A stretch of DNA of 64,000 bases, from contig JBLDXI010000023.1 in NCBI GenBank assembly GCA_047495785.1, positions 62,001 to 126,000 of the forward strand. Direction: 5' to 3'. A model generated the notes under the pieces. It was given only the letters and a program-made list of their open reading frames with translations. It made no database searches and was not told where the DNA came from. Shown here piece after piece: positions 753 through 60,650 of the stretch. Source of the DNA: Lepidodermella squamata (taxonomy: Eukaryota; Animalia; Gastrotricha). A program made the translations under genes and the position numbers. Position 1 is the first letter of the stretch. Each line of letters starts with the position of its first letter.

Positions 753-3737
753 ATGCTTTGTACATCTTTTTCCGTGTATGCGATAATTCTAAGCGCAGCT
801 GCGTATGCTGCGCTGCTCGGCCTCAACGAACCGATGCCGAGCGTCATCGCTTTGGCTGACACCAGCAATTCGACGCGCTCGACTGTTCGCGTGCTGACAA
901 CCATGACGTACACGGGCGTATTCCCGGGCGGGCCGCTGTGCACCGTCGCCACAGAGGCAGCTCTTGTAACTGCGCCAAATGCCGAACTGGCTGCCGGACT
1001 ACAACTTAGAATTCGAGCTCTTCGACGACCAAGTGAGTATACGTCGATATTTGTATGAAACTAAAACTAGTGTCGTGTAACCACGCAGTGCAATGATGGC
1101 TTTGGAGTCAGCGGGGTGGTGCAGCGGTTGCGGTACAACGACGTGGCAGATCACCGCCTGCCGATTTTCATGCCCTCAGAATGCGCCGCACAGGGCCAAG
1201 GTCTCGCGGCCATGGCTTTGCGACATTTCGACGTCATAGGGGTACGTTTATTCATTGGTTGGTACTAAGGCCACGCGAAAGAACATTTCAAGTTGGAAAT
1301 AAGAACCATCGAAATGGCAATAATTGAATCACTTGAACTAGATTCATCAGTTGATGCTTGAAGCATAGCTTTCTCCCGTTTTTTTCAATTGTAACGTATC
1401 CGCAACCTTCGTTTTATAAAGACTCCGTCTTTTACTGTTTCAAAGATTGCCATTTTCCCGCTATCAGTCGATGTGGCTCTCAATCGCAAGAAATTCGACC
1501 ACCTGGTGGCGTTGGGCGAGCAGCCGGACTTTTACTACGCAGCCATGGTCGATTTCGTTGTCGCCATGAACTGGACCCGCGTCGCCGCTCTCTCCGAGAT
1601 CGTACCTCTCTTCAACATTGTAATCTCTTTCATGGCTCTGACGCGCATTCTATCATGTTGTAAGATCTGTTTATTTTCAATAGCTTGATTCGTTCCTGGT
1701 GCAGCACCTGGACAAGCATCACATCCAGCTGATCTACATGGAGCAGATCAGCTTCGAGTTTGACGTGCGGTCGTTCTCGCTCGAGGAATTCCGATCGAGA
1801 GACGCGCGCATCATGGTGATCAGTGTTTTCGAGGGCGCTCTCGCCGCCTGCGTGCTGCATCGCAACGGCTTCCACGGGCGCAAGTTCGTGTTCCTATTCT
1901 TCGGCTGGGACAACATCGGCGAGCCGCCGTATATTCCGCCCGAGGCCGCTGAGTGGTGCACGCGAGACATGGTCTACGAAGTTCTCAAGTCGGTCATCCG
2001 ATTCACAGACACCACCTGGAACACTGTGCTGGGTGACGGGTTTCATGACGTAGCCGGTGGGTCGATGGCTGATCTGTACGCCGAGTTCGATCGAAGAATA
2101 GAGGCCCCGCGTACTTCAACCGGGTTCGACTATTGGCCCGAGATTTGCTACGATCGAACTATTGCTGCCGGCTTGGCGTTGAATCTAACCGAGACCGCCC
2201 TGAAATTGAGTAAGTTCATCCCCATGAAAGTAAATATGTAAATAGCGATGTGATACACACTCAGGGAACGAAACTCTCTCGGATTGGCTGACGGACACTG
2301 ACAAGTTCAAAGTCAACGGGTCGCAATTCGTATCGCTGATGCAGCAGGAACTCATGAAGTTGAAGTTCACGGGTCTGAAGGCGGACTACGAATTCGACAA
2401 AGCGACCCGGCTGCCGAAAACTGTCTTCCCAGTGAGTTTCAGGCAAGCCGTAGTCACCAGCGATTTGAATGTCACCTCGACACTCATCGCAGCAGACTCG
2501 CCTGTGATAAACAGCAACCGTTCCTTGGATTTGAAAAGAAGGGCCATGACCTGGGGCGGTGCTATACCGCGTGATTCATTGCAGGTGCACCGTGTTCTGC
2601 AGCCGTACCTACCCACGGCGACTAATGCTGCACTGAAAGGTTGTCACTTTAACTGAAGTCCATGCAAAATTTATCAAAATTGTGTACCTAATTAATCACA
2701 GCTTTCGCTGGTCTGGCAATACTGGTAATTGTAATTTTGGCCGTTTCGCTGAAATGGGGCAAGCAACTTGGTGGTGGCAGGCCAGGGCGATGTGATTACG
2801 CGATGCTTGCAGGCAACGTACTCATTCTATCGCACGTGCTTGTGCTGCCGATGCAATCAGTCAGTTCGGTCAGCATCAGCTGCTCCATTCAAGCCATGCT
2901 GTGCACTCTGGGCGCATCGCTGAATCTAGCCAGCCTCGCAACACGGCTTGAAGATGAGCTGAACAGCAACCGCTCGACCATTCGACGACTCGATGCGTTT
3001 CTCAAGTTCAAAGGCGCTTTCAGCCTCATTTGGGCGGTGTGCCAAAGTGCTCTCCTCGCTGCGTCGTTGAGCTCGGCCCCGATCAAAGCAACAGCTTCGA
3101 GATTGGCAGTCTTGCGTGAAGACGACGAATCCGCGCTGATGGCGTACCATCTCCAGTGCGAGTTCCAGCCCTTCGCGGCATCGTCACAGCTTTCCTCTGC
3201 GTTTTTCGGCCTCGCCTTGGTCACTAACGCGCTGCTGCTGATCCATAGCGTTCAACTGGCGCTGCGCCGATTGCGGAAGAGGTCAAACGCAGTCGCGGAG
3301 CAAACTACTGTGAATTCTCGTTTCAAATCACGAAATGAAATGATAAAAAAACACTTAACGGTAACAAAGCTATGAATTTTGATTTCTGTTTTTAATTACT
3401 AATGCATGCGATTTTGAAACAGGGAGATCGCGGGCGTGTCAGTTTGATGGCCAATCTAGCCCTGTGCAACTGCGGGCTCGTTGTAGCTGCCACTCTGATA
3501 GCATTCCTCGGCGTGAATGACGCGCGGCACGTCGCGGTCTGTGTGGCCGCTTCATCGCTCTGTTTCGTCGCCTTGAATTCGGCGATACTCGCCGTGAACT
3601 TATACCAGCCAGCGAATCGAGAAAAGCACGATCATGGCCATCATGGCGGTTGGAGAGCTAGATCGCCGTTCAACGGCTCGCCGGCTCATTTCGAATTCCC
3701 CGACCATACATCGACACTTCGATGTGACTCTAAGTAG
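753..3737 (+). pseudogene. GABA-B-like class C GPCR, subfamily A, copy A1; frameshift in exon 1 (pseudogene or sequencing error)
   Basis: Exons ~753-1032, 1089-1240, ~1446-1619, 1684-2209, 2264-2639, 2702-3309, 3424-3737 with GT-AG introns. Motifs FPGGPLCTVA, NWLPDY..FDDQ|CNDG, MNWTRVA, RDARI, FFGW, EICYD, FTGL and seven hydrophobic helices match the GABA-B VFT+7TM layout. About 2 nt are missing near 965-970 relative to paralogs A2/A4 (LDNLR), shifting the frame. Confidence 0.8.
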
Positions 3738-4200: not shown

Positions 4201-7200
4201 ATGATGTTACCAAAGCTGCCTATTCTCGCCAGCTTCACCGCTTTATTACAATCAGCGTGCCTCTACTCAGTGCGCGCGAAATTGAATATGACAGAACCCA
4301 TGCCGGAGCTAGTCGTTTCCCCACGCGAGCAGGCTGCGAATCGAACGCTCATTAAAATAGCAGCGAGTCTGACTTACAGCGGGCTGTTCGGATCCGGGCC
4401 GATCTGCACTGTTGCAACCATTTCAGCGCTCGACAATCTGAGGAAGCAGAGCAACTGGCTGCCTGATTACCAAGTAGGTTTCGGGTTCTTCGACGATGTC
4501 GTAAGTTTGCAACGCTTCAACCATGGCTTTGTATTTTCTAATTTCTTGAAGTGTGACAACGGCCCGGCTTTCAATGGGCTGATGCAGCGAATTCGAGCAA
4601 GTGACACGGCTGAGAATCAGTTCCCACTCGTGTTGCTCAGCGAATGCATCGACCAAGCTCAAATTCTTTCTAGCATGGCCTTGCAGTACGTAGACTTCAT
4701 CGGCGTAAGTCGTATTAGTCGTCAATCGGTCAAAATCCTGGTTTTATTCTTGTTAAAATAAAGATGGCCGGCCTGCCGTTGATAATCGAGCAAGTTACCA
4801 ACAGGCACCGCTATCGAAATTTCTTCGCTTTTGGCGAACAACCGGATTTCTACTACCCGGCACTCGTGCAGTACCTGTTGGCTATGAACTGGCGAAAGGT
4901 CGGCATTTTATCCGAGACGGCGATGTATTTTACGCTGGTAAGCATGTCCACCACTTATTCTTCAGAACCTAATAGCGTGTCGAGATGAAATAGCATAGAC
5001 AATAATATCAGATCGGAAACTTACAGTTCTCCTATAGCGTACAATTGCATCAGATGTCAGAAGGGATTAGCGAACCTGCTTGCCTAATTTTCACGCTCTT
5101 TTAACGCTCGCATACACTTGCATTGAAAAATGATCGATTTTGAGGATCGATTTCACAATCTGGTTAGTGATCTTAATTCCTTTAAAAATTAGACCTTGCA
5201 GGGAATTTCGCGGGCTGTCAGAATCATTAAATTTTATTTCAGCACCAATTTCGGTTGATTTTCTACTACATTTTGAAAACAATCATTTTCAGTTTTCAGC
5301 AAAACTGCCAAAGTGGCTCAAGTTTGCGGGCGGAAGTTTTATATGCTTCAATTGTATTATAATATATTTTATTTAAATATAACTGTTGCACTCATCAGAT
5401 GGACAATTACCTGGGTAAGCACTTGGACGATCATGGTATCCAGCTGCTGTACCTTGAGAAGATCGATTTCAGCATTAGCTTGGATGGCTACACTCTAGAA
5501 GAGTTCGCATCGCGAGACCCTCGCATAATTATCGTACAGGTGTATTACGGAACCCTCGCAGCGTGCATTCTACACCGTGCAGGCTTCCACGGGCCAAAGT
5601 ACGTGTTTTTCTTCTACGGCTGGGACAACATTGGCAAGAGCCCGGAAGTGCCGCCCGAAGCTGCAGATTGGTGTACACAGGAGATGATTTTGCAAGTCGC
5701 CGCCAGTGTCATCCGATACACTGATACCAACTGGAATTTGGTGTATGGACCCAATTTCACAGACTCCACCGGGCAGTCGATGGATGGCCTGAAGAATACT
5801 CTTGAGCAGGAGATCTTTGACCCTCAGGCGACGCTAAGCTACGACTACTGGCCTGAGCTGTGCTATGACAGGGCTGTGGCAGTTGGCATAGCCCTAAATC
5901 TGACTGAGGCAGAGTTGCGCAAAAGTGAGCTATTATTCTCGAATTCCGATTTTTCATTTTCAAAGACGAAAATTTAACAGGAAACCAAACTCTGTCGGAT
6001 TGGTTTACAAATAGGGAACTTTTTCAATCCCGTGGATATGAACTCGCGAGTTTGATGCGCAGCGTAATGGCTACCATTGAATTTGTCGGTTTGAAAGCAA
6101 ATTACGCATTCGAGGAGGCAACAGGCGAGTCCAAGACGAAATTCCCGGTTACGTTCAGCCAAACCGTGGCCCAAGGCAGCACGAGCTACTACGTCCCAGT
6201 CGCTTTCGCGGTGCCAGCCGGCGGGGCGAAAAAGCGACTTGTTGCGTCGCAATTCGCGACTGCCAACTGGCGAACAATCGGCAACGTTCCGCCGGTAGAT
6301 TCGCTCAGAATTATCCGAATTTTGGAAAGGCCCGTGCCATTGCCAGCTAACGTTGTTCTCAAAGGTGAGTCTCATTTCCTGATTTGTTTCAATAAGACAG
6401 TGTACGAAGTTGAGGTTGCATACATGGGATAGGGGAGAATGGGTGTACCCCCAGCTGGAGAGGTTCGGGCAAGACTTTAATACCAAGTTAGGGAGAGAGC
6501 AATCAAGATCTCCAGTTGGCGAAATCAAAATGGAAACTCCCCAAAAAACCAAATGGGCCCGAAAATACCCCTAATTCGAGGATCATACCACACGCACCTG
6601 TGGTACCCTTTTGGGTAGCGAGTATAGGGCCAACATGCGCGAAATACCGACACGAAAACCCTATTTCGTACACTGTCTCCAGATACCTTTCTGTTTGCTA
6701 TTTGTTTCAACGATCCTTTTGTTTTTCCTAAATCATTCAGTGTTGAGTAGTTTGCTTATGATCGCTGTGTTCAGCTGCTTTATCGCGATACGATACGTAA
6801 AACTTTCAGAACTCTCCAACAGCGTCATCAGCAGCGAGCAGCGGCGAGTAAGGGCATCACGCAATAAATTGCTCGATGGATCACTTATAGCCGTGGGGAA
6901 TGCCCTTATTCTCGCGAATGTTCTCGCTATCCCGGTCGATGCGACGAACAAGATTGCCAGGAACTGCACAGTTGCCGCCGTGCTGTGCCAGCTCGGCTTC
7001 AGCCTCAGCCTGGCAGGCGTCGCCAGTCAGATGAGCCGCGAATATTGCCGCAAAGGCGCACTCCTCACCGCACTGCCCGTGAACTGGTTCAACCGAAAAT
7101 TTCACTCGCGAGCAAGCTTCACCATGTCGTGGGCGATTCTTCACGGCGTCCTGTTAGCTATTGCCTTGTTGATTTCGCCGATCAGAGTCGCCGACGTCGA

Positions 7201-7764
7201 GTTGCCACTTCGATCTCTAACGTCCGACTACAACGTCGCGATATCGCCGCACAGGTTCGACTGCGAATGGCCGCTGCTGTTCGACGCATCGCACGGGCTG
7301 GATCTGTTAGGCATCTCCATTTGCCTGCATTCACTACTAATTCTACATCTGATCCACTTGTCGCTGTCCATGCTCCGATTTCAGGCTAAAGCAGCCCAGA
7401 AGAAATTCCTTATGGCGGCTATGCGTCAACTTGTCACAGTGAGTGTAAAGCAGTTAGTTGTTGGTTATGAGAACTTGTTTACTGTTCTTACTTCTTACAG
7501 ATCACAATCATGACAAGGACATCAATTCGTCGCACTTTTGCGGCGCGAAAGTGGATGAGCAGAGGCACGTACATGCCGGCTAATTTCGTGTTCTGCGCTA
7601 GTACCGCCCTGCTCGCAGGCGTGCTCGTCGCTCTCTTAGACTCGAGCAGCATGCCGCATCTGCTGATCACGCAAGCCGTCACGTCGCTCGCCTTCGTTGC
7701 CCTCAGCCTCGGTCTGCTTTTCGCCCCAGAGATGATCTTTAATCACAGGCTCTACGGTGACTAA
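4201..7764 (+). CDS. GABA-B-like class C GPCR, subfamily A, copy A2 (apparently intact, 7 exons)
   Basis: Exons 4201-4500, 4552-4704, 4764-4937, 5399-5924, 5981-6364, 6741-7438, 7501-7764 at the same intron positions and phases as A1. Signal peptide, VFT motifs (GPICTVA, FDDV|CDNG, RDPRII, FYGWDNIG, WPELCYD) and 7TM with TM3 Cys and ECL2 Cys. Confidence 0.88.
6395..6678. mobile_element. Small inverted-repeat element (MITE-like) in an A2 intron
   Basis: 14-bp perfect inverted repeat AGACAGTGTACGAA (6395-6408) / TTCGTACACTGTCT (6665-6678) containing CAGTG...CACTG. It enlarges an intron that is about 60 nt in paralogs. No clear TSD. Confidence 0.45.
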
Positions 7765-8435
7765 TAAACAAAGAGCCGGTATTAAGCGTTCTTTCATTAA
7801 ATCAACTCGTATCTAAGTCAGTCGCAAGTTCAATGGCGCTTATAACTTCGCCTCCTCCTGTTCGGCATTATTTGTCGAGAGGGAGTGACGCGCCAGCCAT
7901 GCCGCATGAGCCAAAGCGGATTCGCCTTTCAAGTAGCGCACAGACCTCAGACAATTTGACCGATATTATGATTGCCTGTAACCAATCTCACCAAGTGTCT
8001 GAGAAGCTATAGTAAGGCAGTGACAGTTTACTAATATAGTATGAAATGTGGACTTTTAGGTATTTAGCAACTTGAATCTGGTGGTCTAACAGAACACGAC
8101 ACAGCATCCTCAGTCCTCATCAGGTTTCATGCTGTTCTGACATTTGCATGAAGCAAAATAGACAATAAAAATTAAGTTCAACCTGGAAAACGTTTAGAAT
8201 ATTCGGGGGCTATTCCCTGATTAGCACTGGACACAATGGACAGTTTATTCACTGCGTATTCTTATCTGGCTTTCTTATACACGCATGAAGAACGCAGAGA
8301 AGGTATGCTATTCTAGTAGGCGTGATACGAAAATCGGCAAAAAGATAAGGAATGTTATCAATTACACCTATATATCCCACCCAGTGGTACTAATTCCTAG
8401 TGGAGTAAGTGTGTTTTCCTGTGCTTCCTCAGTCC

Positions 8436-10545
8436 ATGAATTACGCTAAAATGAACGCTTCTGTTTCGCTGTCCTCGACCGCTCGTAGCGACTTCGAAAT
8501 GGAAGTAGAATCGCCATCAGGCGATAAATGCTACTTGCGACGCGGCATCAACATGATAACTGAACAGCCAGTGCATGAACCGTCCGTCTTCAACTGGATG
8601 CACGTTCTCGTCGTTTTCCTGTGCGCTGGCCTCACGTACGGCGCTGTTCTCATCGAAGTATCAACGCTTCCTGGTGTACCCGATCCGACATCGAAATTCG
8701 GCATTCCAGCTGCAAATATCGACAATTATTTGCTTGATACTGATCAATTTGTAACAGCTCGCACGAGGAAGTCTCTGAACTCAATCACCGCCTTTGGACC
8801 TAGGCCTGCTAGGTCTGATGCGGCTGAAAATACAGTCCAGTTCTTCAATTCTTACCTAACAAATCTAGCTAAGCTGCTACCTGCAGGTAGCCCGCATCGA
8901 TTTTCTTACGCTGTTCGACCGAGATCTTCAAACAATCAGGGTATGATGAACGTGGTCGCCAAAGTTGAATCGAATGCTTTGAAATCGGACTCCTCCATCC
9001 TTGTCAGCTGCCACTATGATTCCGTTGCTAAGGTAAAGCTGTAAACAATGTAGTAAATTGGCCTAATCCGTTGTCCAATTTTTTTAGGCTCCTGGAGCAG
9101 GCGATGATGCTCTCAACTGCGCAATTATGATGGAAATGATCCGAGCCCTCCTGTCATCAAGCACCCCTGTCTCACAGCCCATCATTTTCCTATTCAATGA
9201 AGGCGAGGAGAATCGCATGCTGGGAGCCAAGGCATTTGTCCAAACAGACCCATGGCGGACGAATATCAAAACCTTCATCAATTTAGATGCGGCTGGCAGC
9301 GGTGGTCGCGAAGTTCTGTTTCAAAGCGGACCCGGAGCTGATACAAATCGAGTGATTGAGGCTTACAGCAAAGGCGTGACCTACCCATTTGCGACAGTGA
9401 TCGCGCAAGAAATCTACGCATCTGGCGTAATCCCGTCTTACACTGACTACGAAACTTACACTCAAGACGGCAAGTGGCCGGGCATCGACATCGCCTATTA
9501 CTCAAATGGTTACGTCTACCATACGCCATACGATACGCCAGACCGCATTCCAGACGGGACGATCCAGCGATGCGGGACTAACATTCTAGGAATCGCTAAA
9601 TATCTAGCGAGCGATGCCGAACTCGACAGTTATTCAAATTTGGACATTGCGTCAACGTCGGCGGACCAGAAAGTTGTGTATTTCGACATTTTCGGCCTTT
9701 CGATGGCCGTTTACGACTTTGCAACAGCTGGCTACGCTATCAACAGCCTGGGCATCATTTTCGTCTTCGCTAGAATCATCGTTCGATGTGCTGTGACGCG
9801 GCTGAGTTACTTGAAGACGTTTTCCTTAGTGCTGGTAGCTCAAATCCTAACACTTGTGATTCCTGGCGGCATTCTAGTCATGACAGGGTACTTGCTGCAA
9901 TCGGGTGGCGCGGGTAGCGGCTTTTGGTACGCCCGGCCTTGGATGCTGCTCTTCATCCATGTTTTCCCGGCTATTACACTCGGCGTTCTTATTCACGCTC
10001 TCATCTTCCGCTTCATCATCGCGAGATTCGAGGCAGACGTCCAAAATGCTCACGATGCAGCAATCGACGTTGCCATGGTGATTTGCAGCATTCTAGTGGC
10101 AGCTGCGACTGGCCTCGGCTATGCGAGCGGGTACATTTTCGCCATTTTCTGGGTCTGGTGGCCGTTGATTTTCGACTCGATGGGCGTCGCATTCCAGAAG
10201 TTGGTTCTCGCCCCGAAACCCTTCTCAAATTGGGTGCTCGCGACCGTTGCCTCGCTTCGCCACTTCATAACAACGTTCGTGCCTACGTTTTACTACTTCT
10301 ACGTCATGAGCATCCTGCTGGACACGATGGTGCCGATAGCCGGCCGGTCGGGTGAGGTCGACCCGTCCTACGAATTGATTATCGCCGGTATTGTTGCGCT
10401 GATGACGCTGTTCCCGCTCATGTTCCACTCGGCTACTGTCCACCTCGCGGCAGGGCGTGTTGTTCACTTTTTACTCCTAGCTTTGCTGCTTATTATCATT
10501 GGCGTCATCATGCTTTTCTCACTTCCCGCAGCCTCGCCCTACTAA
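8436..10545 (+). CDS. ERMP1: ERMP1-like M28 membrane metallopeptidase, copy 1 (2 exons, ~684 aa, lacks the C-terminal luminal domain)
   Basis: Exons 8436-9032 and 9088-10545 (55-nt intron). N-terminal TM, then M28 motifs SCHYDSV, APGAGDD, FLFNEGEE, FINLDAAGSGGRE.LFQ.GP, G.IPS.TDY, PGIDIAY..NGYVYHT.YD and VYFD, followed by a multi-TM block. Confidence 0.9.
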
Positions 10546-25610: not shown

Positions 25611-25619
25611 AGGGCAGAA

Positions 25620-43080: not shown

Positions 43081-43121
43081 TTGTTGCGTAACATAATGTT
43101 ATAAAATATTTTTTTTATATT

Positions 43122-46365: not shown

Positions 46366-46630
46366 GCTTCGGAGACGCGTCCGAAGTTTTAGCCTCCGAA
46401 GTTTCGTAATCGCTCTCCGAAGTTTGAGATTTTCTATCACAAACGCGCGCACTTTGGACTACGCGCCCGAAGTGAGAACAATGGGCGGCGCGCACGCACT
46501 GGACAAAGGACGCGCGCAAACTTCGGTTCGGAGAGGCCCACAACTGCTCATCTCCGAAGCGCCTCCGAACCGAAGTTTGTGCGTGTCCGAAGTTACTACG
46601 TACGCACGCGCGCGCGGCCACTTGACTGCG
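46366..46630. repeat. GC-rich cluster of CCGAAG(TT) motifs in both orientations with a local hairpin; probable transposon subterminal region
   Basis: About 8 copies of CCGAAG(TT)/CTTCGG. GCAAACTTCGGTTCGGAGAGGC pairs imperfectly with GCCTCCGAACCGAAGTTTGT. Confidence 0.55.
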
Positions 46631-46865
46631 CGAGGTAGGGCGACGACATAAATTAATTGTTCCTGTGGCATCTTCAATTGGTATTATTGACTATAAATGA
46701 CGAAAATGACGAAAATGACGTAAATTTCAATATAAATTAAATTTTTCTATCTCGGTTTTTTCATTATATGCCAGCCCGAGGGCGCCAAGCATTTACAAAA
46801 TTCTAGTGATTTTCAACTTTCACAGCTTGTGAAGTTGCAGGAGCCGTTGCAGCCGGGTCTCTAGC

Positions 46866-48827: not shown

Positions 48828-49329
48828 TCAGCGTGCGCGCGCACGCAATAGCGAGAAAAGGAAGAGTCAATTCATTTGCGTCATAGCGCACTTTCCTTCT
48901 TTATTTTTCTCGAGCTCCATCATGACGATAACTTCCATACAGTTTGAAAGCATAAATTAGATTGATTGAAAGCAACAAAAATTTTCGCTGGAATCAGCAG
49001 CAGCAGTTAAGAGTCAATAAAATATTGCCATGTTTTCAGAATTATCGTCTGGATTTTAAGAAATATTGAAATATTGTAATGTAACTAACGGCTTTAACAA
49101 TCTTCGATAAGATCTGAGATACATCAAGTAAGTATAAAGTATAAAATCAAGTATTTCAGACAATTAAAAATTTTGAGTTATTGACGTTTAAGCGAAACAA
49201 TGGGTTCAAAATGGCCACTAAGGCCGGAGCCGGAGAATTTTAGGAAAATGGCGCCATTAGAATGATCAAAAGCAATTGTATTATTTGCACTTGAAGTGTC
49301 ATAATTTAGGGCAATCACATTCTCGTAAG

Positions 49330-50387
49330 CAGTGTTCCGACTGCGGGGGGTACGGGGGTGGCGCGTACCCCCTTGGAGATTACCCAAAAAGTGGAAGGGG
49401 TGCCACGTACCCCCTAGCAGATTTGAAAAAGGAAATTTTTATGAAAAAATCTGGCTTCACCATGGGTCAAAATTTGAAAATGTTCATTCTAAATGACACT
49501 ATTATCAGCTTTCCAAGCGTTTTACGTATAATAATTGGTGTGACTTTCGATGACTAAGCGTACAGCGAGAATCCCAAACAACTTGGAATATCCCAATAAA
49601 TTTCTGATAATGAGCTTAAAAAATTAAAAATCAAAATTTGAACGCTGCGGAATTTTTAAAAACAAATTAGATATTCTGAATCAGCATGAAAAGTTGGGCT
49701 AGAGTGCAAATTTGCGCGCGATTACATTGAAAATTGAGGGAGAAATAGTGGAAAGTAAATTTTCATTTTAGTGAGCGCGCGCACTACGAAATCAGCTTCC
49801 TCGCAAACGCGGGCGAGGTTGTACACGCATTAACCGGAGAAAAGCGATCGCAGTTGACGTGCGCGTGCTAGTCACGCACATACAAGCGCGCTTCTTCAAC
49901 GTCTCATTTCTCCCTCAATTTTCAATGTAATCGCGCGCATATTTGCAGTCTAGCCTAACTTTTCATGCTGATTCAGAATATCTAATTTGTTTTTAAAAAT
50001 TCCGCAGCGTTCAAATTTTGATTTTTAATTTTTTACGCGCCACATTTTTTAGACGATATCTAATGCAAAATTTGACGTAATTTCAACAGTTTGTTAATAA
50101 GTTATATCAATTTAAATGCAATTTTGGGCAAAATTGCTTCGAAAATCTAAAATTTTTCTTGCTCGCTTCGCTTGCACACGAGAAGGATAGCCTGTTTAAT
50201 TTCACGCTTCAGTTCAACTAAACACCTGTAAAATTGTTGCACGTTGCCAATTTCTAATGAAAAATGGAAATATATAAATAGTAATTATAGGTGTTAGCTG
50301 GCAATGCGAGCGAACGAAGTTCGCGAGCGAAATTTTTTTATCACCTTTTGGCGTACCCCCTAGCACTCAAACCTAGTCGGATCACTG
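49330..50387. mobile_element. Non-autonomous hAT element with 13-bp TIRs and 8-bp TSD
   Basis: CAGTGTTCCGACT ... AGTCGGATCACTG (12/13 match), TSD CTCGTAAG at 49322-49329 and 50388-50395, subterminal GTACCCCCT repeats. Removal restores ...RYTYE|NVIAL... Confidence 0.92.
49617..50035. repeat. Foldback with ~130-bp inverted arms inside the hAT element
   Basis: 49617-49747 is the near-perfect reverse complement of 49906-50035, around a GC-rich spacer of about 160 bp. Confidence 0.9.
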
Positions 50388-52267
50388 CTCGTAAGTATAA
50401 CGGTGCCAGCCGCTTCGAGTGGCGCCAGCGATGCTGGAGTGCTCGGCGCCGTAGATGAATATTGGTATTTGAAACAGGGCCGCGGCGGCGTGTACTTCAG
50501 GGCCATCGGTTGGCTGCCCGAGCCTGGTTTTCAGGTTTTTCAGCGAGTGTCGCGGCGAAAGCTGGCAAACCTTCCAGGCATTGACGTTGAACAAGTGCCG
50601 GCAGATGAGCACGACCACGGCGGTGTTTCACCCGACGTTTGCCACTTGCACCACCGTATCCTTCGACAGCTTGTTCTGGGTTAATTTCAGCAAGATTGGA
50701 CTTCGGTGTCTTCGGCTCAACTGGACCTTTGCCGATTGTGTCAAGCGCCTTCAATACCAGGCCGTAGTCAACGTCCAAGGCAGCTCTGGCGTACATAGCA
50801 ATCGTGTCAGCTTTGCGTCGAGAGATTTTGTTTTTAGACATGTCCTGACGTATTTCAACGACAGCATTCGAAACGGTGCCTTTTGGACAACCGGCCAGCC
50901 GAACGTAGGGTGACCACCAGCACGGAAAAATGGCCAACAGGTTGTCTCTGAACATAGTCGCGATTTTAGGGCAGAAGTAAGGGTTCGCTTCAAAATCGCC
51001 ACGGTCGATTTGACGATTTGCTGCCGAAAGTTCCTCGCTGAAAACTCGTTCGAATTGAGAGAAAATAGGCTGACAGGCTTGCTTGTAGGTCGGTTGCTTT
51101 TGAACCAAGTCGTTTTTGATGTCAAAAAACATTAAATTCGAGCCAACTTCTCCTGAGACCGGATTGTCAGTAGACTGGCCATCCTGCTGATTGATCTCCG
51201 CCTGAACATCGATAGCGGCTTTCATGGCTGACTCCACCTCGTCTCGAAGTACGACGCCCTGATTCCAAACCGCCATGAGTTCAGCATCGGCAGCGGAAAC
51301 TTCAGGAGTCAGAAATTTGTTCACTGTTAACCGAGTCGAAGAAACTTCAGGAAATTCAAGAAATTTTCCGAACTTTGAATTACTCCAAAGCATTTCAGCA
51401 AGGCAAATTTCGAATCCGAACCATGTTCGCGATCAGTTCGGAACCAATTCGAAATCGCTTTAACAACATGGCCGATGCAGAGCAGTATGAAGGTAAAGAT
51501 GCAACCCTCGGGTATGACGACTTCGCCGGGTCGATCAGCTTCATCAATCGGCCGGGTAAACGTAACAACGCGAAATATATGCCTGAAAGCAGCATTGATT
51601 GAAGGTCTGACTGACCGCTTGAAGTAAGTCGAAGGAAATATCGCAAACCACGCCTCGCGGGCCCTTACAACTGGAATGGGCAGCATGGACGCGTTGTTTC
51701 CAAAGCCCGAGGGCATTTTGAATGGCGTTGGCGTGTTGATTAGCCAAAAACCAGGTCAGAAGAACGACGTTCGCCAAAAAACCAGCAAGACCAGCGCGGC
51801 TCGGGCACATGACGTATTGAAGAACGGCGCTGCCATCTTGCTCATCATTAGCAATCGTTTCACCCGTCGCATCAATATGAACCAGTAGGTCCTCGAAAAG
51901 CGAAACCAATTTAAAGAACAGAGAAATTTGATCATTCAGGAGTAAAATGCAGAATGTCGGAATTCCTATTTCTCGTATGTACACCTTCTCAGGAGGGCCA
52001 TTCTTCTGCTCCTCTCGTAAACAAGCCAAGTCGATGTAGCCATTGGCGTGAAATCTGACCAAAAGCTGCTTGTCCGATTTCGCTTTTCGGATAACTTCCG
52101 CCGATGGAGCCTGAGATAAATTGTTGTTGTCGCGAGCCTCTTGAGGAACTTTGCCATAAAGCTTGGCGTGAAGAACAACGGCCGATTCAGATGAAGATGC
52201 TAATTCCTCGCGGCGTTCGATTTGCCAGTGCTAGTCACATGTCTTACCCAGACCGGCACGGGCAGTG

Positions 52268-52526
52268 CCGAACACCGCCGAACAACGTTTTTTGAAGAAA
52301 AACAGCGACGAACAGGCCCGAACAATTTTCGGATGTCGATCGAAGACTCCGAACAAAGTGGAACAACTGCTAGCGTTTGTTCGATGTTGTTCCTTTATGT
52401 GAAACGTAACGAAGCATAACGAACAAAAGCGAACTAGTGGAAAATAAATGTTCGGAGTTGTTCATTGCTGTGAAACGTGACGTACAAAACAGAACAAATA
52501 TACACATTTTGTTCCCAGTTGTTCCC
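52268..52526. repeat. Array of GAACA/TGTTC motifs in both orientations upstream of the transposase
   Basis: More than ten GAACA or TGTTC occurrences in about 260 bp; probable transposase-binding subterminal repeats. Confidence 0.5.
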
Positions 52527-53617
52527 GTCTAGTTTAATCGGATGCAAGTAGGAAAATATGTGAAATTATGAGTCGAATTTCAACTCGTGACCGTTGACTA
52601 ATCGAATTAATAAAACAGCTCATAGTAGCCCAATGTTTTACAGGTTACGTGTTTTGCCATTGCAAATTCGTGTATAATGGAATTTTCGGCATTGTCTCTT
52701 GCTCAAATATGGTGCTCTCATTTCCATTAGTTTAATACCAAGAAATAAGAATAAATGAAAACAAGCGCATTTGAGTCATAATACGGCACATTTTATTGCT
52801 GAAATACCAGTTGTAGTCCTAATGATTTATATAAAATAAATCATAAAACTCGCGCTTCATCCATGCATAGCAAGTAGTCAGATTAATCACTGGATTTTGC
52901 GGTTTGAAATTATACATTTTTCTCGCAGATGCCCAACGGTTTGAAGCTCGAAGGGACATGTTCTCCGCTGATCAAGTTGTATCGTCAGAAATTAGCCTTT
53001 TTAATGGCCTGTAATTGAGTCAAATAGCTGAGAAATATCGATTTCATAAGGCTCGCTCAATCACGATGTATTATTTTGGAGAGAAAACTTATGCGATCGT
53101 AAAGTTATAACCATTCGGGAATATTTAAGGAAAATTCAATGTGATTATATATGGCAGTAACAGCTCCAACTTTTCTTACGAGATCAGGTTAAGAAGTCAT
53201 AAATCGTAACAACAAATAAATCATTATTTAATTAATATTTAGTTAAGATTTTATGATTCTCAGTTAAGATTTCAGGGAACAGAAGCCGGGAACATATTGT
53301 AATGTAATAGCACATATTTTCAAGGTTCAAATTGAAATTCGGAGTTCGAAGGGAAGAAATTAGGAAATATTAAGGCGGATGTGAAGCATCATTTGTTCTC
53401 ATTACAACACGGCGATGTAAAGATGCCCTGAAATTATTACCAAAATCACCAGTTATCACAAACGAAATCACTATTGCAATATCGAATATGGATGAGCATT
53501 GATATATTTCACCTCGTAGAAAATAAACGAATTACTTCATGAAACAATCATATTTTAGGAGCAACTCTACGGCACATTATTCAAATGAGAATTTGCCTTC
53601 GAGGTGGATCGGGTTCG

Positions 53618-53953
53618 TTAGGGTGTAGATCGCGACCTAGAAGGACGAGCGGAAGGCGATGCGATTGTACAGTTTATCGCAGACGGAGTATTGAACCTGT
53701 TGTTGCCAACGAAGAGGCCGCTGTTGACGAACAAGGCATATGGCACCAAGCTCCACGACTTGAGGCCGACGAACGACGAGGCCAAATCCGCCAGTCTCCA
53801 GTCGGTGAAGAAGAGACCGAAATTGGAGATCGAGTAGCCGTAGATGCCAGACGAATTGTTATTTAGGCAGTTGAACAGGCTGAACGAGTTCGGGTAGCCG
53901 TAATAATCCCCACATGCTAGGTACGACTGGAATAAAGAGGGTACTTCAGTCAT
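53618..53953 (-). other. Coding-like fragment of unknown identity within the TE island
   Basis: GC-rich island in AT-rich surroundings; the minus frame has strong C/G third-position bias (GIYGYSISNFGLFFTDW...). No family recognised. Confidence 0.3.
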
Positions 53954-54795
53954 GCCGTAACAGCTGAGCTGCTTCTCATTTCAGCACCGATGGCTGCGCT
54001 AAGTGTTGGCCAGCCACAGGAGTGCAGTAGTAAACCAACGTAATTTTCTCTCGCCTCTGATCTCGCTTCTTCCAGCTGATCATCCATTTCATCTTCAATT
54101 CGACACTCAGTAGCCTATTAATAATAATAATTAAGACTTGATTAAAAAAAGACATTTCTATCGCACCTTATCCACGGCACCGTACCAGGATGCTGCTGCT
54201 AATTGTTGAGGATTTAGTGCCCGGCGAGAGGAGACTAGAGATTGGGCGGGGAAAGTGAGCGTATCAGGAGTTCTCCCTGATTTTCCCTGATTTTCCTATC
54301 ACAACATTATTACTACTGGAGTAGACAGAATAAAATGTCGACTTACCTCACGTCCCATAGTTACTGATGGTTACAATATTTTGATACGAAATTCGATTAA
54401 AATCATTCGAGACTAGGATAAATTGATATCGAAGCCAGTTTCATTTGCTATGATGCGAAGCTTGGCGATTTCGGCGAGTCGGGCGAAGATGATTCTAAAA
54501 TAGCACAATATTATTATTTTAATTGTTTAAACAAATAGCGATCTATAAATTATTAATTATTCAGTAGAACTTCGTACTGAAAAACTATTTTCCAAGCTCT
54601 TAACCCTAGCCCTAATAACTACTGTAACAAATAATTACTCATGCAATTTTTATTTTAATAGATCATGATTTCTGTCTTTGATTCTTTTGATCATTAATTT
54701 TTGATACTTACACGAAAAACGATTGTTTACAACATTGGTAAACTTGTTTAATATTAGTCTCGAAACTTGATTGTTGATATCCTTATTTGTTGTCA

Positions 54796-54837
54796 GACCC
54801 TGAAGATCATGGCTGAATAAAAGCTGAAACATGTCGG
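54796..54837 (+). ncRNA. Second Penelope-type hammerhead motif (solo pseudo-LTR remnant, possibly degenerate)
   Basis: GACC-CUGAAGA-UCAU-GGCU(GAAUAAA)AGCU-GAAA-CAUGUC^GG with the same ATTTGTTGT.AGACC leader as the 43836-43873 copy. It has extra nucleotides before stem II. Confidence 0.65.
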
Positions 54838-55890
54838 ATTAGGCGACTGGTTTTTCGTTTTTAAGTCTTAATTCTTAATTATGATATCGCTTTACCATCA
54901 AATCTTACGACTAAAAATCGAAATAGTTTATTGCAGCCGATAAATTTCCATGGATGAGCCCGTTGTATGGCGAGAATCGGTTGAAACTTGCAAGCCGCCT
55001 GTTCGAGCAAAATTCTTGCCTGAAACAGCAAGGAATCCTCCTCGGACAACCTCTCCAGAAGAATGATTGCTGCTTAAGTCTTTTTCAAATGGATCGCTGT
55101 CCGGACTCTGGACGAATATTTACGCTTCGAGGCAACAATTTATTTGCGCTCCTCGCGGAAGCTGTAAGGATCATTTTTCATTTGCTTGGCATCGATCTGG
55201 ACTACACTGACAGACCACAAAAAACTGCTTCATGAAGCAAGTTCGATTTTTGCAAGTGGTTTTAATTCATTTTATTTGCTTCAGCAAATTTCAAGTTCTT
55301 CAATTTCAGTGGTTCATATTGCTCCTTAAATTACGAAAAATATAACCAGCGTGTTCGTTGTGATTTCACCTATCTGGAACCATCAGCCAAAATGTTTAAT
55401 TGTGATCGGAACCAACGAAATATTTAGTTTCCATGGCCTCAAAGCCTATGATGAATCAGCTGACCATCTGTCGCCCTTGGCGTACACCCTTTTTGACGTT
55501 AGGGGGCGATCTCTACTGAATCATTTGTCATCAGAATGAAGATGCATTTAATTGATTGTGATTAATTTCTCTGTATTCTGTATTATAGGGGATGCTTATC
55601 AGAAATAAAGCTGATTATGTATTTTGTATTGTCTTGTTGGGAACATCTATCAAACTCATAATGAGTGGCTAAGTGAGTTCTGAGGCTATGTGTTATGTGT
55701 CACATTAAAAGTGACCAATCGTGAAATGTCGACAATTTAAAACAAAATCGCCATATTCAATGTGTACAATTTGGCGGATCCTTACAACGCCATGTTGACC
55801 ACAAGGGGTAATCCATATTATCGAGGAATGCGAATCCGAATTGATTTTTCTATCCGGAATAGTGATCAAAAAAAAATCACTGCTCTGATA

Positions 55891-57996
55891 TCAATGCTCT
55901 GATACACCACGGATTTGTTTCAACTGAAACGCAGTCATCAGCGTGTAGATTAGCAGCAGCATCTGAATGGCCCCGAACGATCCTAGCAGGGCTAAACTAA
56001 CGTCCGGCATTTCACATATCACGAACCAAGTTTCTTCCACAGTATCAGAATTTTCATCGTAAATGGGCCGCTGATTTGACTGTTCAACACATGTTGAGTT
56101 ATAGCGAGTAATCAACCACGCGATTATCAAGCCTAAGCTAGGGCAAGCTACAACAGGCCCGTAAGTCACGGTTTTGTTGTCAAACGTTTTGAAAGTCCCC
56201 GACGTGAATCGAACTATCAGTTTCGGTGATCGAGCCGTAGATGGATACATGCTTGTCGGGGCAGATGTCGGGGCCACGGTTAATCGTGATTTCCGCAGCC
56301 CTTTTCTGATGCTCGCTCTAACAAATGCATTTAGGACTGACATTTTGGCTGTAATCAGGCTGCAAACGAAACTCAGGCCGAGGCCTAGAATGAAAATCAC
56401 GGCGTTTTCAATTTCTGCGCTTCCGGCACTCTGTTCTATCACGGAAAGGGCTGAAGCTGCGTTTAAGCTGACGAGACCTATCAAGACGAAGATTTTTGAC
56501 CGTCCAAAATTCCAGAGATCGAATTTCTTGAAAGAAATCGCTGCTATACCTGCTAGTTTTAAACAGGATGAGAAAATCGATAAGGCTATGACAATCGAAA
56601 AGACTGCCGTCGAAATTCGGAGAAAAACCTTCCGAAAAATCGGTTGATCCAGCGGGAGTCTCATTGCAATCGGGTTGAGCGTATCCAACGAGTAACTTCT
56701 CAGATCGAATTCTTCAAGAGCTTTGTTCAGACTTTGCTTGACAAGGTACAGTATCTGCATGCCAGCTGACTGGCTCCACTGAGTCACAACCTGAATATCT
56801 CCCAGCAGTTGGCCAGTTTTGCTGTATGAAGTTCTACCAACTCTGATCCCATTCGGTTCCCTAGCTAAAATAACTTCTTTGGCAATGGAAACCACAATTT
56901 CAGGGCGACTTTCATAGTCTCTGAGTGAGAGATTGAATTCAGTCTTCAACCTACGATCAGTCTCATTGAGGGCTAATACGGCGTTAGTAAGAACATCGTT
57001 GATGTGGAAAGAAGTCAGGTACTCATCAACAGTCAAGTTTGTTGCACGGCTGATGAAACTCTCAAACTGATCAGCTGTATCGCCAAGGTCCGAAATTCTG
57101 TCGCGAACCGTCGGCCTTTGCGCATTGCCAAAGTAGAAAGTTTGCCTAGCTTGGTCTCTTAGTAGCTCCGAACTGCAGCCAAGTAGCGGAGACAATGAGA
57201 AAGCATTCGAAAATGCGAGGAAAACAAATCTGGGCCCAGTTATTCCAGCCTTGTGAGCCTCACAAAGAAATCGCGGGACGATTGTCGAGCTGAAGCTTGA
57301 AATAACTAGAATCCTTAAGCCGGATTTCTTCAGACTGGCAATCACCTCCAACATTGCTTCATCGATCAGGTTGAATATTGGAACTTCAAGCCCGGCTGCT
57401 ACTGCTCGGTTGTTGAAATACAGCCCAGTCAGAAAATCGCTGCCGTAGAGGGTTGTTGTGAGCGAGGCGACCTTTTTCCATCTACCAACCTGCTGAATGA
57501 ACCTTAGCATTGCCACGGCAGTTATTCTTGATGTTGCCAGGGTAAGGAACATATTCGGGTACAAATTTCTATCGGTCAACTGCTGAGCGACGCAAAAGCT
57601 CGACAGAGAAACTGTTTTAATGTGGCCTAGAAAAGTCCCGACAGCCGTGCAGCCCGTTGCAACCGCCGGTCCAATGACGATTGGAGATTGCAATCCGATC
57701 GAAGGGTCTTCTCTGCGGAACCCAATCAAGCGCGAAGCTGCTTGCCATCCCACGATCTCGTCCATCAGGTGGAACTCGAGGAAATAGTCGTTCAACACAT
57801 CACTTCTAGCGTTGATTTTATCGGCGACATAATGCATGGTTTCCACCCCGGCTTGAGCTTGTTTTGGGTCGATCAGGTAAATCGGGGACAGAATTGCCAC
57901 CCGCAGCTTTTGTGCTCTGTAGCCAGCCGTCATGCTTGACCGAATCGCAGAAATATGCATCAGAAGTGTGACAATTATTAACCTGTTTTGAAGCAT
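55891..57996 (-). pseudogene. Subfamily-C GPCR C4: close paralog of C3, truncated after TM5 (701 aa; no TM6 or TM7)
   Basis: Collinear with C3 up to QIRGVSEH, then a stop at a junction with a short TGCTCTGATA duplication, followed by unrelated AT-rich DNA. The ORF is otherwise undisrupted. Confidence 0.85.
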
Positions 57997-58352
57997 GTTT
58001 TTGTCAATTATTAGTGCAGTATGAAAATTTTAATATTTTGAAACCACCGGAATCCGCATGATTGCAGTCATGCTTGGTTTAATATTTCAAAATCGATAAA
58101 AATATGCACCCGGCAAAAGCCATTTCCAACAGACAAATTTTACTCTCGCATTTCACTAATTTTGCACGTCCAGGCCTTCAACGAACTAATCAGCTGCAGA
58201 AATAAGCGGCGAATTCGGCTAGTTCATTGACCTCATGGCGAATGCCCCATTGCTAATTAGGCACGCATTTGAGGTGTTGACGCAAGATCTCGATCATTAC
58301 CCTTGCTTTCACATCAGCCTCTAACCCAACTGTCGAATTTCTGAAATGAAAA

Positions 58353-60650
58353 ATGGTCAGCTTTATTGCTTTCGCTTTATTTAGCCTCAACGCTGCGTTC
58401 AGCGTGGCGACGGCTGCATTCAACGAAACAAAGCCGGTGAAACTGAAAATTCTATTTCTCGCCACCCTCACTCAAATCGACCCATTTGCAACGAAACTGA
58501 TGACGCTGTCTGCGGAATTTGCTATCGAACGTGCTAATGCCAGGCCGGATGTTCTTCCCGGTTATCAATTGGAACTTGAATTCGCCGATGAGGATCTAGG
58601 GAATGCAGCCGTTCGGCAATTGGTCAACTTCAGGAATCGGGCCGCCGATGAGTTGCAAGCCCCTATTATCGTCGGGCCTAGTTTCTCTACTGGTTGCAAA
58701 GCTGCTGGTGCGATTTTACACTACTTAAGCACAGTTGGCATTAGCCAATCTTGCGTGGGACCTAAATTTGAAGACCGCTGGCTTACTCCGAACATGTACC
58801 TATCTCTGTCAACGTTCAGATCGTCTATAATGACGATTCTCATATTCATCAAAGATGTCGGAAAATGGAAGCGATTCGGCATTTGGGCCAATTCTGGCAA
58901 TGTCAACGATTATCAAAACGCGTTCTTCCTTAATGAAAAGGCTGTTAGCTCGGGCCTAGCAGTTCCTTGGTTTAACATTGCCACTGAAGTTCTTCAGGAG
59001 GATCTCGAGTCTTTGAAGATAAGCGGGCTTAGAATCATTTATATAGGAAATTCGAACGGCGTAATTCTAGTCAAATTTCTTTGCGAGGCCCATCTAGCTG
59101 GACTCAGGGGGCCTCGATACATCTTTCTGGCTCCATCCGGTGGGATTGGTGCCTCTCCCGCGAATTCGAAATGTTCTCAGACGGTGTTGATCGAGCAAAT
59201 TCGTCACACTTACTTCTTCGGCAACACCTACCTAGAAAACTACACTCAAACTACAGATCTGGGCTATACTAATCTCGAATTATACAGTGAGATTAGCCGC
59301 AGGGCAAATCGATCGCTGGATGCACTGGCTTGGCTAATAGTTGGCCATGATTCCACCCTAGCAGTCATTATGGCTCTGAATGCTACAGAGACGAAACTCA
59401 GAGCCAACTACAATATGTCGCTACGTGACTATTCTGAAAATCCGCAGTTTATAGCTAGCATTGCCAACGAGTCTGTGATGAATGTTCGATTCACAGGTGC
59501 TCATTACGGCGAGAGGTTCTACAGCTCAGCCGGGCTAATTCAAGGCGATGTTCAAGGCGCACTCATCTATCGTGAGTCATTCGGCGTTAAATACGTTGGA
59601 TTGCAGCGATTAAAGGCCGGGAATCACAGTCAGAATCCATACGATATTGCCAACTATGAAATCAACTTTGTTCGTGATGTGGATTGGATCGAAGGGAGGC
59701 CGCCTTTGGACAGACCTAGAATTGAAATTTGCACCTCGAAAATTTCATTTGAGCTAATTGCCGTAATTTGGTCTGCGCTGAGTGTACTTTCGTCCAACCA
59801 AGCTGTCGCTGCTATTTTCCTCTGGAAATTCAGGCTTCACATCTGGGTGAAATTTCCACGTGCTAAAATGTTTGGTCTAGGAGGCTGTCTACTTCTAAAT
59901 TTATCAGCAGGAACTTTCGTACTTGAGAATCACTTCGCCCAAATATGTACGATTTTTCTTATTTTAGTCAGCGGATCAATGATTTTCGGCACAGCTTCTA
60001 TCAGACCAATTGTTCTGCTGGAATTTACGCGAGAAGTTCGAACTCACGCGAAAAAAGTTAAAAGAGAGCATCCGTTCAATATTTGGTTCTCGGCGCAAAT
60101 CTGGTGGATCTTGGATATTTCCGTCGTCAGGGCAGTTTCAATCTATACTCTGGTTTGTGCTTCTCTGTCCGCGGGCTTGATCGCTAGCCAGAATTTCAAA
60201 TGCGAATCGAAGCTTTCATTCGGGTCATTTTACAACGATGCATCAGATACCGTGTTTGAGAGTCAATCGATGCAGTGTTCATGGAGTGCTGCTTACACCA
60301 CCGTTGGTTGGAGTCTCATCGGGACGATTGCAGGACTCCAAACTGTAGCTCTGTCCCTCGCCATCGTCTCGTGCTATCAATTGAAGCGAGTGAAAGGCAT
60401 GGCCCGTGTTCGTGAGTTTTGGCCCATGTGCTTCGCTGCCGCCACTGGCATAACCCTGTACGCGTCTGCCATTGGCGTAGCAGTGCTAACAGCGCAAGAT
60501 CAAGTGGAGCAGCGTATTGCTGTGTCGCTGTGCTGTCTCCTGATTTCAATGACCGAGTCTGCCACCTGGATTGCGCCTCTAGCATCGAACATATTGCAAC
60601 GCCGTCGCATTGCTGCTAGGAGACGATTCTCCGAAAGGAGTTCACGATAA
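58353..60650 (+). CDS. GABA-B-like class C GPCR, subfamily C, copy C5 (intronless, 765 aa)
   Basis: Single ORF with signal peptide, NARPDVLPGYQL, PIIVGP, GKWKRFG, FLCEAHLAGLRGPRYIFL, FTG, PPLD, 7TM and an Arg-rich short tail. Confidence 0.92.
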   Translation: MVSFIAFALFSLNAAFSVATAAFNETKPVKLKILFLATLTQIDPFATKLMTLSAEFAIERANARPDVLPGYQLELEFADEDLGNAAVRQLVNFRNRAADELQAPIIVGPSFSTGCKAAGAILHYLSTVGISQSCVGPKFEDRWLTPNMYLSLSTFRSSIMTILIFIKDVGKWKRFGIWANSGNVNDYQNAFFLNEKAVSSGLAVPWFNIATEVLQEDLESLKISGLRIIYIGNSNGVILVKFLCEAHLAGLRGPRYIFLAPSGGIGASPANSKCSQTVLIEQIRHTYFFGNTYLENYTQTTDLGYTNLELYSEISRRANRSLDALAWLIVGHDSTLAVIMALNATETKLRANYNMSLRDYSENPQFIASIANESVMNVRFTGAHYGERFYSSAGLIQGDVQGALIYRESFGVKYVGLQRLKAGNHSQNPYDIANYEINFVRDVDWIEGRPPLDRPRIEICTSKISFELIAVIWSALSVLSSNQAVAAIFLWKFRLHIWVKFPRAKMFGLGGCLLLNLSAGTFVLENHFAQICTIFLILVSGSMIFGTASIRPIVLLEFTREVRTHAKKVKREHPFNIWFSAQIWWILDISVVRAVSIYTLVCASLSAGLIASQNFKCESKLSFGSFYNDASDTVFESQSMQCSWSAAYTTVGWSLIGTIAGLQTVALSLAIVSCYQLKRVKGMARVREFWPMCFAAATGITLYASAIGVAVLTAQDQVEQRIAVSLCCLLISMTESATWIAPLASNILQRRRIAARRRFSERSSR

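Follow-up and report, generated by a model that had tools for sequence, protein, structure and literature searches.

Genomic Organization of the Receptor Cluster

The window analyzed here, a stretch of 64,000 nucleotides (nt) of Lepidodermella squamata (contig JBLDXI010000023.1, positions 62,001-126,000 of the forward strand; all positions below are window-based), carries a local cluster of class C G protein-coupled receptor (GPCR) genes of the GABA-B type, whose products join an extracellular flytrap to seven transmembrane (TM) helices without a cysteine-rich domain (CRD). Searches with tblastn using the curated proteins of six intact copies (A2, B1, B3, C1, C3, and C5) matched 14 places in the window, 12 gene-sized and two relics, exactly the count that the original prediction had given for positions 753-60650, limits that correspond to the ATG of A1 and the stop codon of C5. 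Four long open reading frames (ORFs) of 701-783 amino acids, each with a Pfam ANF_receptor match, are present, and tblastn with these and with shorter ORFs yielded three groups of mutually similar loci, designated subfamilies A, B, and C.

The tblastn spans of the gene-sized loci are, in order, 828-3303 (+), 4201-7761 (+), 10813-13655 (-), 16221-19285 (-), 20326-22626 (+), 23777-25213 (+), 26925-28838 (-), 30197-33431 (+), 35743-38464 (+), 40360-42708 (-), 55894-58008 (-), and 58353-60647 (+), with the relics at 34637-34882 (+) and 38589-38966 (-). This gives the sequence A1 (+), A2 (+), an ERMP1-like gene (+), B1 (-), B2 (-), C1 (+), A3 (+), C2 (-), A4 (+), a C relic (+), B3 (+), a C relic (-), C3 (-), 13 kb of transposon debris, C4 (-), C5 (+), and a second ERMP1-like gene (-). 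The proposal of a tandem array thus holds as far as a local cluster is concerned, but not in the strict head-to-tail sense, as orientations are mixed, members of the three subfamilies are interleaved, and the first ERMP1-like gene (ERMP1a) and the 13-kb spacer lie within the cluster span, with the second (ERMP1b) just beyond its end.

Subfamilies and Gene Models

The division into three subfamilies is borne out by sequence identity, exon structure, and profile-profile comparison. Subfamily A genes have seven exons, subfamily B genes have five, and subfamily C genes are intronless; all four intron positions of B are also intron positions in A. Identity is 34-44% within A (68% for A3/A4), 47-52% within B, and 30-40% within C (84% for C3/C4), against 22-27% between A and B and, over partial alignments, about 20-27% between A/B and C. 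Profile-profile comparison (hhalign) gave E-values of 3e-51 for A and B, 7e-16 for A and C, and 2e-8 for B and C. Gene models were obtained with a dynamic programme based on codon usage and paralogue conservation, and junctions were then checked by eye and by enumeration; the splice models of A and B were derived from homology and consensus splice sites rather than from RNA. The genome of the window's organism has introns of ~50 nt and a GC content of about 45%. The introns of A2, B1, and B3 are of the GT-AG type and 50-128 nt long, save two in A2 (376 and 461 nt), and GT-AG introns of ~55 nt are genuine in this genome, since a complementary DNA (cDNA) contig of ERMP1a skips positions 9031-9085.

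The new gene models led to the same split into six intact and six damaged copies as had been described before. A2 (4201-7764, +) encodes 832 amino acids, with a signal peptide and seven hydrophobic segments, in seven exons (4201-4500, 4552-4704, 4764-4937, 5399-5924, 5981-6364, 6741-7438, and 7501-7764) separated by introns of 51, 59, 461, 56, 376, and 62 nt, whose donors all read GTAAGT, GTGAGT, GTAAGC, or GTGAGC. The two intact subfamily B genes have five exons each: B1 (10810-13655, -; 833 amino acids), with exons at 13655-13317, 13245-12922, 12793-11878, 11820-11237, and 11148-10810 and introns of 71, 128, 57, and 88 nt, and B3 (35743-38467, +; 818 amino acids), with exons at 35743-36009, 36060-36383, 36438-37359, 37416-37990, and 38099-38467 and introns of 50, 54, 56, and 108 nt. 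The intact members of subfamily C are single intronless ORFs, namely C1 (20326-22629, +; 767 amino acids), C3 (40357-42708, -; 783 amino acids), which aligns with C1 over its full length at 40% identity, and C5 (58353-60650, +; 765 amino acids), which is 30-32% identical to C1 and C3, also over the full length.

Damage takes different forms among the remaining loci. A1 (753-3734, +), a subfamily A copy of about seven exons, has a frameshift near 960-975, where the conserved NWLPDY...FDD motif stands in a different frame, and its remainder is colinear with A2. A3 (23777-25607, +) is truncated at the 5' end, retaining the C-terminal flytrap lobe and the seven helices; it lacks the first ~385 codons, and its homology to A2 starts at A2 residue 385. 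A4 (30197-33780, +) is probably damaged, with a stop-containing insertion in a conserved exon at 31289-31327 and an exon broken by about 430 nt at 32261-32686, two sites at which A1, A2, and A3 are continuous. B2 (16152-19354, -) is a pseudogene in which the flytrap segment is frame-shifted, a low-complexity stretch is inserted, TM3 is deleted, and TM7 has degenerated. C2 (26907-28850, -), also a pseudogene, is matched by the C-family profile in at least seven frame pieces (profile positions 116-761), and its N-terminus is gone. C4 (55891-57996, -) is a truncated recent duplicate of C3 (84% amino acid identity) without TM6-TM7; its DNA is 74-97% identical to that of C3 as far as codon 701, where a stop marks the break, and no more than randomly similar past it. 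Within 25 nt at this break, the motif TATCAGAGCA is present in two copies, which possibly mark a rearrangement or insertion junction. The two subfamily C relics comprise the TM4-TM5 region alone (34637-34882, +; 49-53% identity to C3/C4 by tblastn, E 1e-18; profile match 4e-20 at positions 612-693) and the TM3-TM5 region (38577-39023, -; 39-44% identity to C3/C4, E 1e-20 to 3e-22; several profile pieces).

Domain Architecture and Kinship with GABA-B Receptors

Every intact protein carries a signal peptide and about seven hydrophobic segments, with 0-70 residues past the last helix. The flytrap was recognized by Pfam ANF_receptor in C1 (1.1e-14), C3 (1.2e-19), and C5 (5.8e-10), and C4 also scored above the cut-off; the flytrap exon of B3 fell below it (3e-4), and the protein atlas groups this exon with ANF_receptor clusters. 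The helices of C1 matched 7tm_3 at 8.3e-10 (39.2 bits vs a curated cut-off of 33.5). Pfam gave no significant match on single ORFs of A and B, leaving their helices unrecognized; a seven-helix domain of the 7tm_3 type, direct in C, is supported in A and B indirectly by seven hydrophobic segments, by the hhalign alignment of B with C across the helices, and by GABA-B R1/R2 as sole PDB matches. No NCD3G match was found by Pfam, and the linker from the flytrap to TM1 is about 25-35 residues long and cysteine-free in all three subfamilies. Together with the C1 structural model, these results agree with the architecture that had been predicted, a flytrap and seven helices without a CRD.

The nearest known relatives of these proteins are the GABA-B receptors, as predicted. 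In a single-sequence PDB search, the matches of C1 were GABBR1 (5e-9) and GABBR2 (E about 7e-4), followed by T1R as the next family (0.04). A profile of 34 sequences from the C clade matched GABBR1 over its full length at 2.5e-124, colinearly from flytrap to TM7, and GABBR2 at 1e-104, and reached mGluR4 at 1e-25 over the first flytrap lobe only. This alignment combines the C proteins with metagenomic relatives and includes three spiralian GABA-B-like proteins, so that its E-values are somewhat inflated; the ranking is unaffected, because the single-sequence C1 search already shows it. The AlphaFold model of C1 (predicted local distance difference test, pLDDT, 87.4; predicted template modelling score, pTM, 0.70) comprises a flytrap, a beta-strand stalk, seven helices, and a hairpin in extracellular loop 2 (ECL2). 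Foldseek comparison of this model with the PDB returned GABA-B subunits as all of the best 26 matches (TM-score 0.62-0.72 over ~750 columns), whereas CaSR and mGluR structures superposed poorly (TM-score about 0.4, root-mean-square deviation 14-18 Å) because their cysteine-rich spacer is missing in C1. The best AlphaFold-DB cluster for the model was B3RV24 (E 1.4e-35), an uncharacterized class C protein which we take to be a Trichoplax entry. For A and B, the profile of the exons covering TM1-5 had GABA-B R1/R2 as its sole matches in the whole PDB (E 0.0035-0.09), the helices have a TM3 C...LGFSL signature in common with GABA-B, and the flytrap exon of B3 had GABBR2 as its sole PDB matches (E 0.02). 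All copies are therefore GABA-B-type class C GPCRs of the CRD-less branch.

Other class C families were considered and rejected, namely GPR156, which has no flytrap; GPR158/179, which have a Cache domain; BOSS; and mGluR, CaSR, T1R, and V2R, which have a CRD.

The closest known systems by sequence and structure are thus GABBR1/2 (human; Drosophila GABA-B-R1/R2; PDB 7ca3, 6wiv, 9jqx, and 9jr0), which likewise join the flytrap to the helices by a short stalk without a CRD and share the G-x-PP-x-D stalk motif, the LGFSL-type signature in TM3, and, in subfamily C, a basic residue at 3.50 and an acidic one at 6.35. However, the window copies are 12-17% identical to them in structural alignments, are multicopy, clustered, and half pseudogenized, and in subfamily C are intronless.

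Phylogenetic Placement and the Ligand Pocket

Two unrooted trees were computed, a FastTree of 109 rows and an IQ-TREE (LG+C20) of 46 rows, both without an mGluR outgroup. The subfamily C genes of the window form one clade (support 99-100) inside a clade with metagenomic proteins supported at 100, A and B together form a clade of their own (100), and named GABBR1/2 proteins of Lineus, Gigantopelta, Owenia, and Holothuria form a third (100 in FastTree, 99 in IQ-TREE), outside of which both A+B and C fall in both trees. This topology points to subfamily C and A+B as two separate deep lineages, not one radiation, and to clade C as common to at least one other animal known from metagenomes. The expression "GABA-B-derived" used previously is sound where it places the genes in the GABA-B-type, CRD-less branch and goes too far where it states derivation from GABA-B; belonging to that branch is the better wording, because neither tree is rooted or includes an mGluR outgroup.

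The ligand pocket differs from that of GABA-B receptors. The comparison used what we take to be the eight GABA contacts of GB1 in Geng et al. 2013 (W65, S130, G151, S153, H170, Y250, W278, and E349; GB1b numbering), the numbering being validated by finding the expected letter at the computed offset in the aligned PDB chain. In C1, C3, and C5, the equivalent of S130 alone is kept (one of the eight), and the replaced positions read D, L/F/S, V, L, N/S, S/T, and I/T/W. Across relatives, the GABA-contact columns are hypervariable. The positions of S130 and H170 read P and F in B3, although the alignment is weak there. A pair of cysteines, C131 and C150 of C1, is invariant in C1, C3, C4, and C5 and flanks the equivalents of S130 and S153; C645 and C670 of C1, located in the ECL2 hairpin, are also invariant in subfamily C. 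C1, C3, and C5 keep both residues of the class C ionic lock, basic at TM3 position 3.50 and Glu at 6.35, consistent with a switchable receptor. No Pfam match to the coiled-coil domain GBR2_CC (PF18455) was found in the tails of 0-70 amino acids, and there is neither a coiled-coil nor an endoplasmic reticulum (ER)-retention tail as in GABBR1/2. Judging by clade, contact residues, and tail, the receptor genes of the window are not canonical GABBR1/GABBR2 orthologues.

Distribution of Relatives and Published Expansions

A profile of four C proteins searched against 1.84 billion representative proteins recovered 347 relatives, 38 of them below 1e-30. The best scored 299 bits and identity to C1 did not exceed about 24%, so that no close orthologue was found among these representatives; the lineage-specificity that had been proposed is upheld in that no conserved 1:1 orthologue appeared. 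A word-indexed protein search with C1 returned no match, the family being too divergent for the index, and a search of JGI metagenomes with the B3 flytrap exon gave no relative. The best ~45 relatives of C are ORFs from ENA metagenome assemblies. The nearest of them (proteins P0001-P0043 from ERZ23486764, ERZ23486787, ERZ27332993, and ERZ27333047) are full-length, intronless ORFs of ~760-820 amino acids, score 299-90 bits, and share one clade with C, but are only 17-24% identical to C1. Their contigs consist of compact animal DNA with genes for activin receptor, TAF1, SOCS-box proteins, RIC3, and iGluR, and TAF1 of this animal is ~35% identical to mollusc and hemichordate TAF1. The metagenome animal and the organism of the window may be members of one poorly sampled lineage. 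Its loci (L001-L009) are those of an animal with compact, intron-poor genes and at least ~40 divergent subfamily C relatives.

The premise that GABA-B receptors are usually a small conserved family is not borne out in that form, given published expansions. In the passages cited here, nine GABA-B-like receptors are given for Tethya and 46 across four demosponges (bioRxiv 10.1101/120998), and 37 for Trichoplax, 16 for Stylophora, and 29 for Saccoglossus (PMC10133484), and both papers suggest non-GABA ligands or nutrient sensing. Because these expansions already carry the idea of non-GABA ligands, a repertoire derived independently from the GABA-B scaffold, as inferred earlier, is not new in kind. 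According to the same passages, the placozoan, sponge, coral, and acorn-worm sets resemble the present one in their many divergent paralogues, non-conserved GABA pockets, and suggested sensing of other ligands or nutrients; they differ in that the host of the window is apparently a fast-evolving bilaterian with ~50-nt introns. What the window adds is the physical layout of such a set, with interleaved subfamilies, relics, and 6 of 12 copies broken, which the cited passages do not describe.

Expression

Two public sequencing runs hold window DNA, X1, which behaves as genomic (even depth of about 100), and X2, a cDNA library, as indicated by a SMART-type oligo directly at the 5' end of ERMP1a (8431) and by the spliced-out 55-nt intron of that gene. 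Depth in X2 was 60-120 over ERMP1a against 0-4 over A2, and an intergenic stretch was equally faint; bulk expression of A2 is thus low or absent in this one small cDNA run. The faint signal would fit sparse expression in sensory cells, expression at particular stages, or silence. For C1, 25% of the sampled words were present in X2.

The same runs bear on variation at the locus. A DNA contig of X1 skips 402 nt within intron 3 of A2 (4971-5374), a presence/absence polymorphism, probably a small insertion. Over 8431-10050, X1 and X2 carry many common single-base differences from the window (about 2-5%), and at 8639-8825 two alleles of comparable depth occur in X2, one with 0 and one with 10 differences. 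Either heterozygosity is high in the organism or culture, or the window represents one haplotype of a divergent pair. The 5' end of ERMP1a at 8431 is without a spliced leader.

Evolutionary Dynamics and Selection

The ages of the duplicates range from recent (C3/C4) to deep, with saturated synonymous divergence (dS). Since dS is saturated in the old pairs, the ratio of nonsynonymous to synonymous divergence (dN/dS) is informative for C3/C4 and a few windows of other pairs alone. For C3/C4, dN/dS is 0.26 and dS 0.34, with patchy local values from 0.06 (codons 601-700) to 0.76 (codons 501-600), a pattern that suggests gene conversion between copies. For B1/B3 and C1/C3, dN/dS is 0.1-0.27 in windows with measurable dS. 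These ratios indicate that the long-lived intact copies are constrained by purifying selection.

These values bear on the possibility that the locus is a decaying duplicate array, in which most or all copies would be nonfunctional leftovers of segmental duplication, with intact ORFs that are simply young. Half of the 12 copies and both relics are broken, transposon debris lies in the cluster, and A2 is essentially silent in the single cDNA run, all as expected of decay. Set against this, the six intact copies are old (30-52% identity within subfamilies, with saturated dS) and retain frames of 765-833 codons, consensus splice sites, and dN/dS of 0.1-0.3; the chance of a stop-free ORF of 767 codons is about 1e-16, and a quarter of the sampled words of C1 occur in the cDNA run. 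We regard general decay as improbable, the least likely of the explanations considered here.

Birth-and-death evolution, as originally proposed, fits the locus, given a local cluster, the degradation of half of its copies, and duplicates of very different ages. The set is clustered, pseudogene-rich, subject to rapid turnover, and free of conserved orthologues among the representatives searched, features of chemoreceptor families in general. Vertebrate V2R/OlfC and T1R receptors are likewise class C proteins with a flytrap and seven helices and share the genomic clusters, many pseudogenes, and rapid turnover, but they have a CRD and belong to the CaSR-related branch, from whose members the C1 model is structurally remote, as described above. 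In sequence, the matches to CaSR, mGluR, and T1R are confined to the flytrap.

Neighboring Genes and the Transposon-Rich Spacer

The two ERMP1/FXNA-like M28 metallopeptidase genes that accompany the cluster, at 8409-10545 (+) and 61301-63381 (-), are paralogues with 55% identity; both contain the Pfam Peptidase_M28 and ERMP1-TM domains and are unrelated to the receptor genes. A search with ERMP1 brought matches of no more than 32-39% identity, from nematodes, Corallochytrium, and fungi. The spacer at 43000-55890, which separates C3 from C4, is rich in transposons. It includes at 44076-45014 (-) a reverse-transcriptase (RT) C-terminus with a weak GIY-YIG ORF, perhaps Penelope-like, and at 47536-48824 (+) an AP-endonuclease ORF of the long interspersed nuclear element (LINE) type with the beginning of an RT. 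ORFs of 311 and 228 codons at 50500-52230 (-) had no match in a Pfam scan, and an Rfam scan of the whole window gave no match.

Candidate Role of the Receptor Cluster

The most likely candidate role for this cluster of GABA-B-type genes evolving by birth and death is chemical sensing in a broad sense, of environmental or nutrient cues, to which we give about even chances. It is put forward as a hypothesis on two features, the genomic style of the locus and low bulk expression. The cluster would have been built by repeated local duplication and decay, each intact gene yielding a predicted product with a signal peptide, a bilobed flytrap, a short cysteine-free stalk with the G-x-PP-x-D motif, seven helices, and a very short tail. 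If the proteins work like the solved GABA-B receptors, they would form dimers in which a small extracellular ligand closes one of the two flytraps; this closure would rearrange the two seven-helix domains and so activate a G protein. The ligands would not be GABA, because the GABA-contact residues are replaced, and different copies probably recognize different small molecules, because the copies differ most at pocket positions. Pairing with a common signaling partner is possible.

Several observations weigh against a chemosensory repertoire. Within subfamily C, the pocket residues of lobe 1 are invariant (D, V, and L at the positions of W65, S153, and H170), which speaks for one class of ligand common to these copies and against broad tuning, and the mapping of the pocket in A and B rests on weak alignments. 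The relatives in the metagenome animal are mostly single genes amid housekeeping genes, with one possible pair and no arrays. No A2 splice joint was found in the cDNA run X2. In B1/B3 and C1/C3, the helices change more rapidly than the flytrap; for B1/B3, nonsynonymous divergence (dN) is 0.64-0.92 in the former vs 0.13-0.31 in the latter. Vertebrate V2R/OlfC receptors have the opposite pattern.

The invariant pocket and the dispersed single-gene relatives would suit receptors for endogenous signals, that is, an expanded neuromodulatory or metabolic set responding to internal transmitters, metabolites, or peptides. The nearest family, GABA-B, consists of neuromodulator receptors, purifying selection is moderate to strong, and, in the passages cited, expansions in neuron-less animals are discussed as amino-acid or transmitter sensors (PMC10133484; bioRxiv 10.1101/120998). 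However, the pseudogenization of half of the local copies and their fast turnover would be unusual for core signaling receptors, conserved orthologues were not found, and bulk expression of A2 is very low. Endogenous signaling is therefore a possible explanation, though a distinctly less probable one than chemical sensing.

The fast-evolving helices raise another possibility, that the window genes encode ligand-binding subunits resembling GB1, or T1R1/T1R2, which signal through a conserved partner encoded elsewhere, their own helices being relaxed. GABA-B is an obligate heterodimer in which GB2 alone couples to the G protein, and fast helices may mean a relief from G-protein coupling, as in the GB1 subunit. 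Heterodimer structures (7eb2 and 9jr0) are among the Foldseek matches of C1, the helices outpace the flytrap 2-5 fold in B1/B3 and also lead in C1/C3, and B3 has Pro at the S130 position, as does GB2, in what is a weak alignment. On the other hand, the very short tails offer no coiled-coil or ER-retention signal to enforce pairing, and subfamily C retains its ionic-lock residues. We consider this arrangement unlikely, somewhat more so than an endogenous signaling set. Under the chemosensory reading, to which we return, we infer signaling as dimers through G proteins with a diversity of ligands.

The receptor genes of the window constitute a real lineage-specific family; they add a well-documented case to a phenomenon already known and do not represent a system of a new kind. 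The curated models provide six expressible receptors with rebuilt pockets that can be used for ligand screening, and the presence of three intron-structure classes (seven exons, five exons, and intronless) inside one family is a clean example of its kind. This genome would be that of a further bilaterian with a large GABA-B-like set. If the genes prove sensory, the GABA-B scaffold, besides the CaSR-related branch with a CRD, would be convertible to a large, fast-turnover repertoire in a bilaterian. Tentatively, and with no more confidence than the endogenous signaling alternative receives, a fast-evolving bilaterian may have made CRD-less GABA-B-type receptors a main chemoreceptor repertoire, perhaps working through a shared partner subunit. 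If that is true, a large sensory GPCR family would have arisen independently of the rhodopsin-like, V2R/OlfC, GR/OR, and nematode families.

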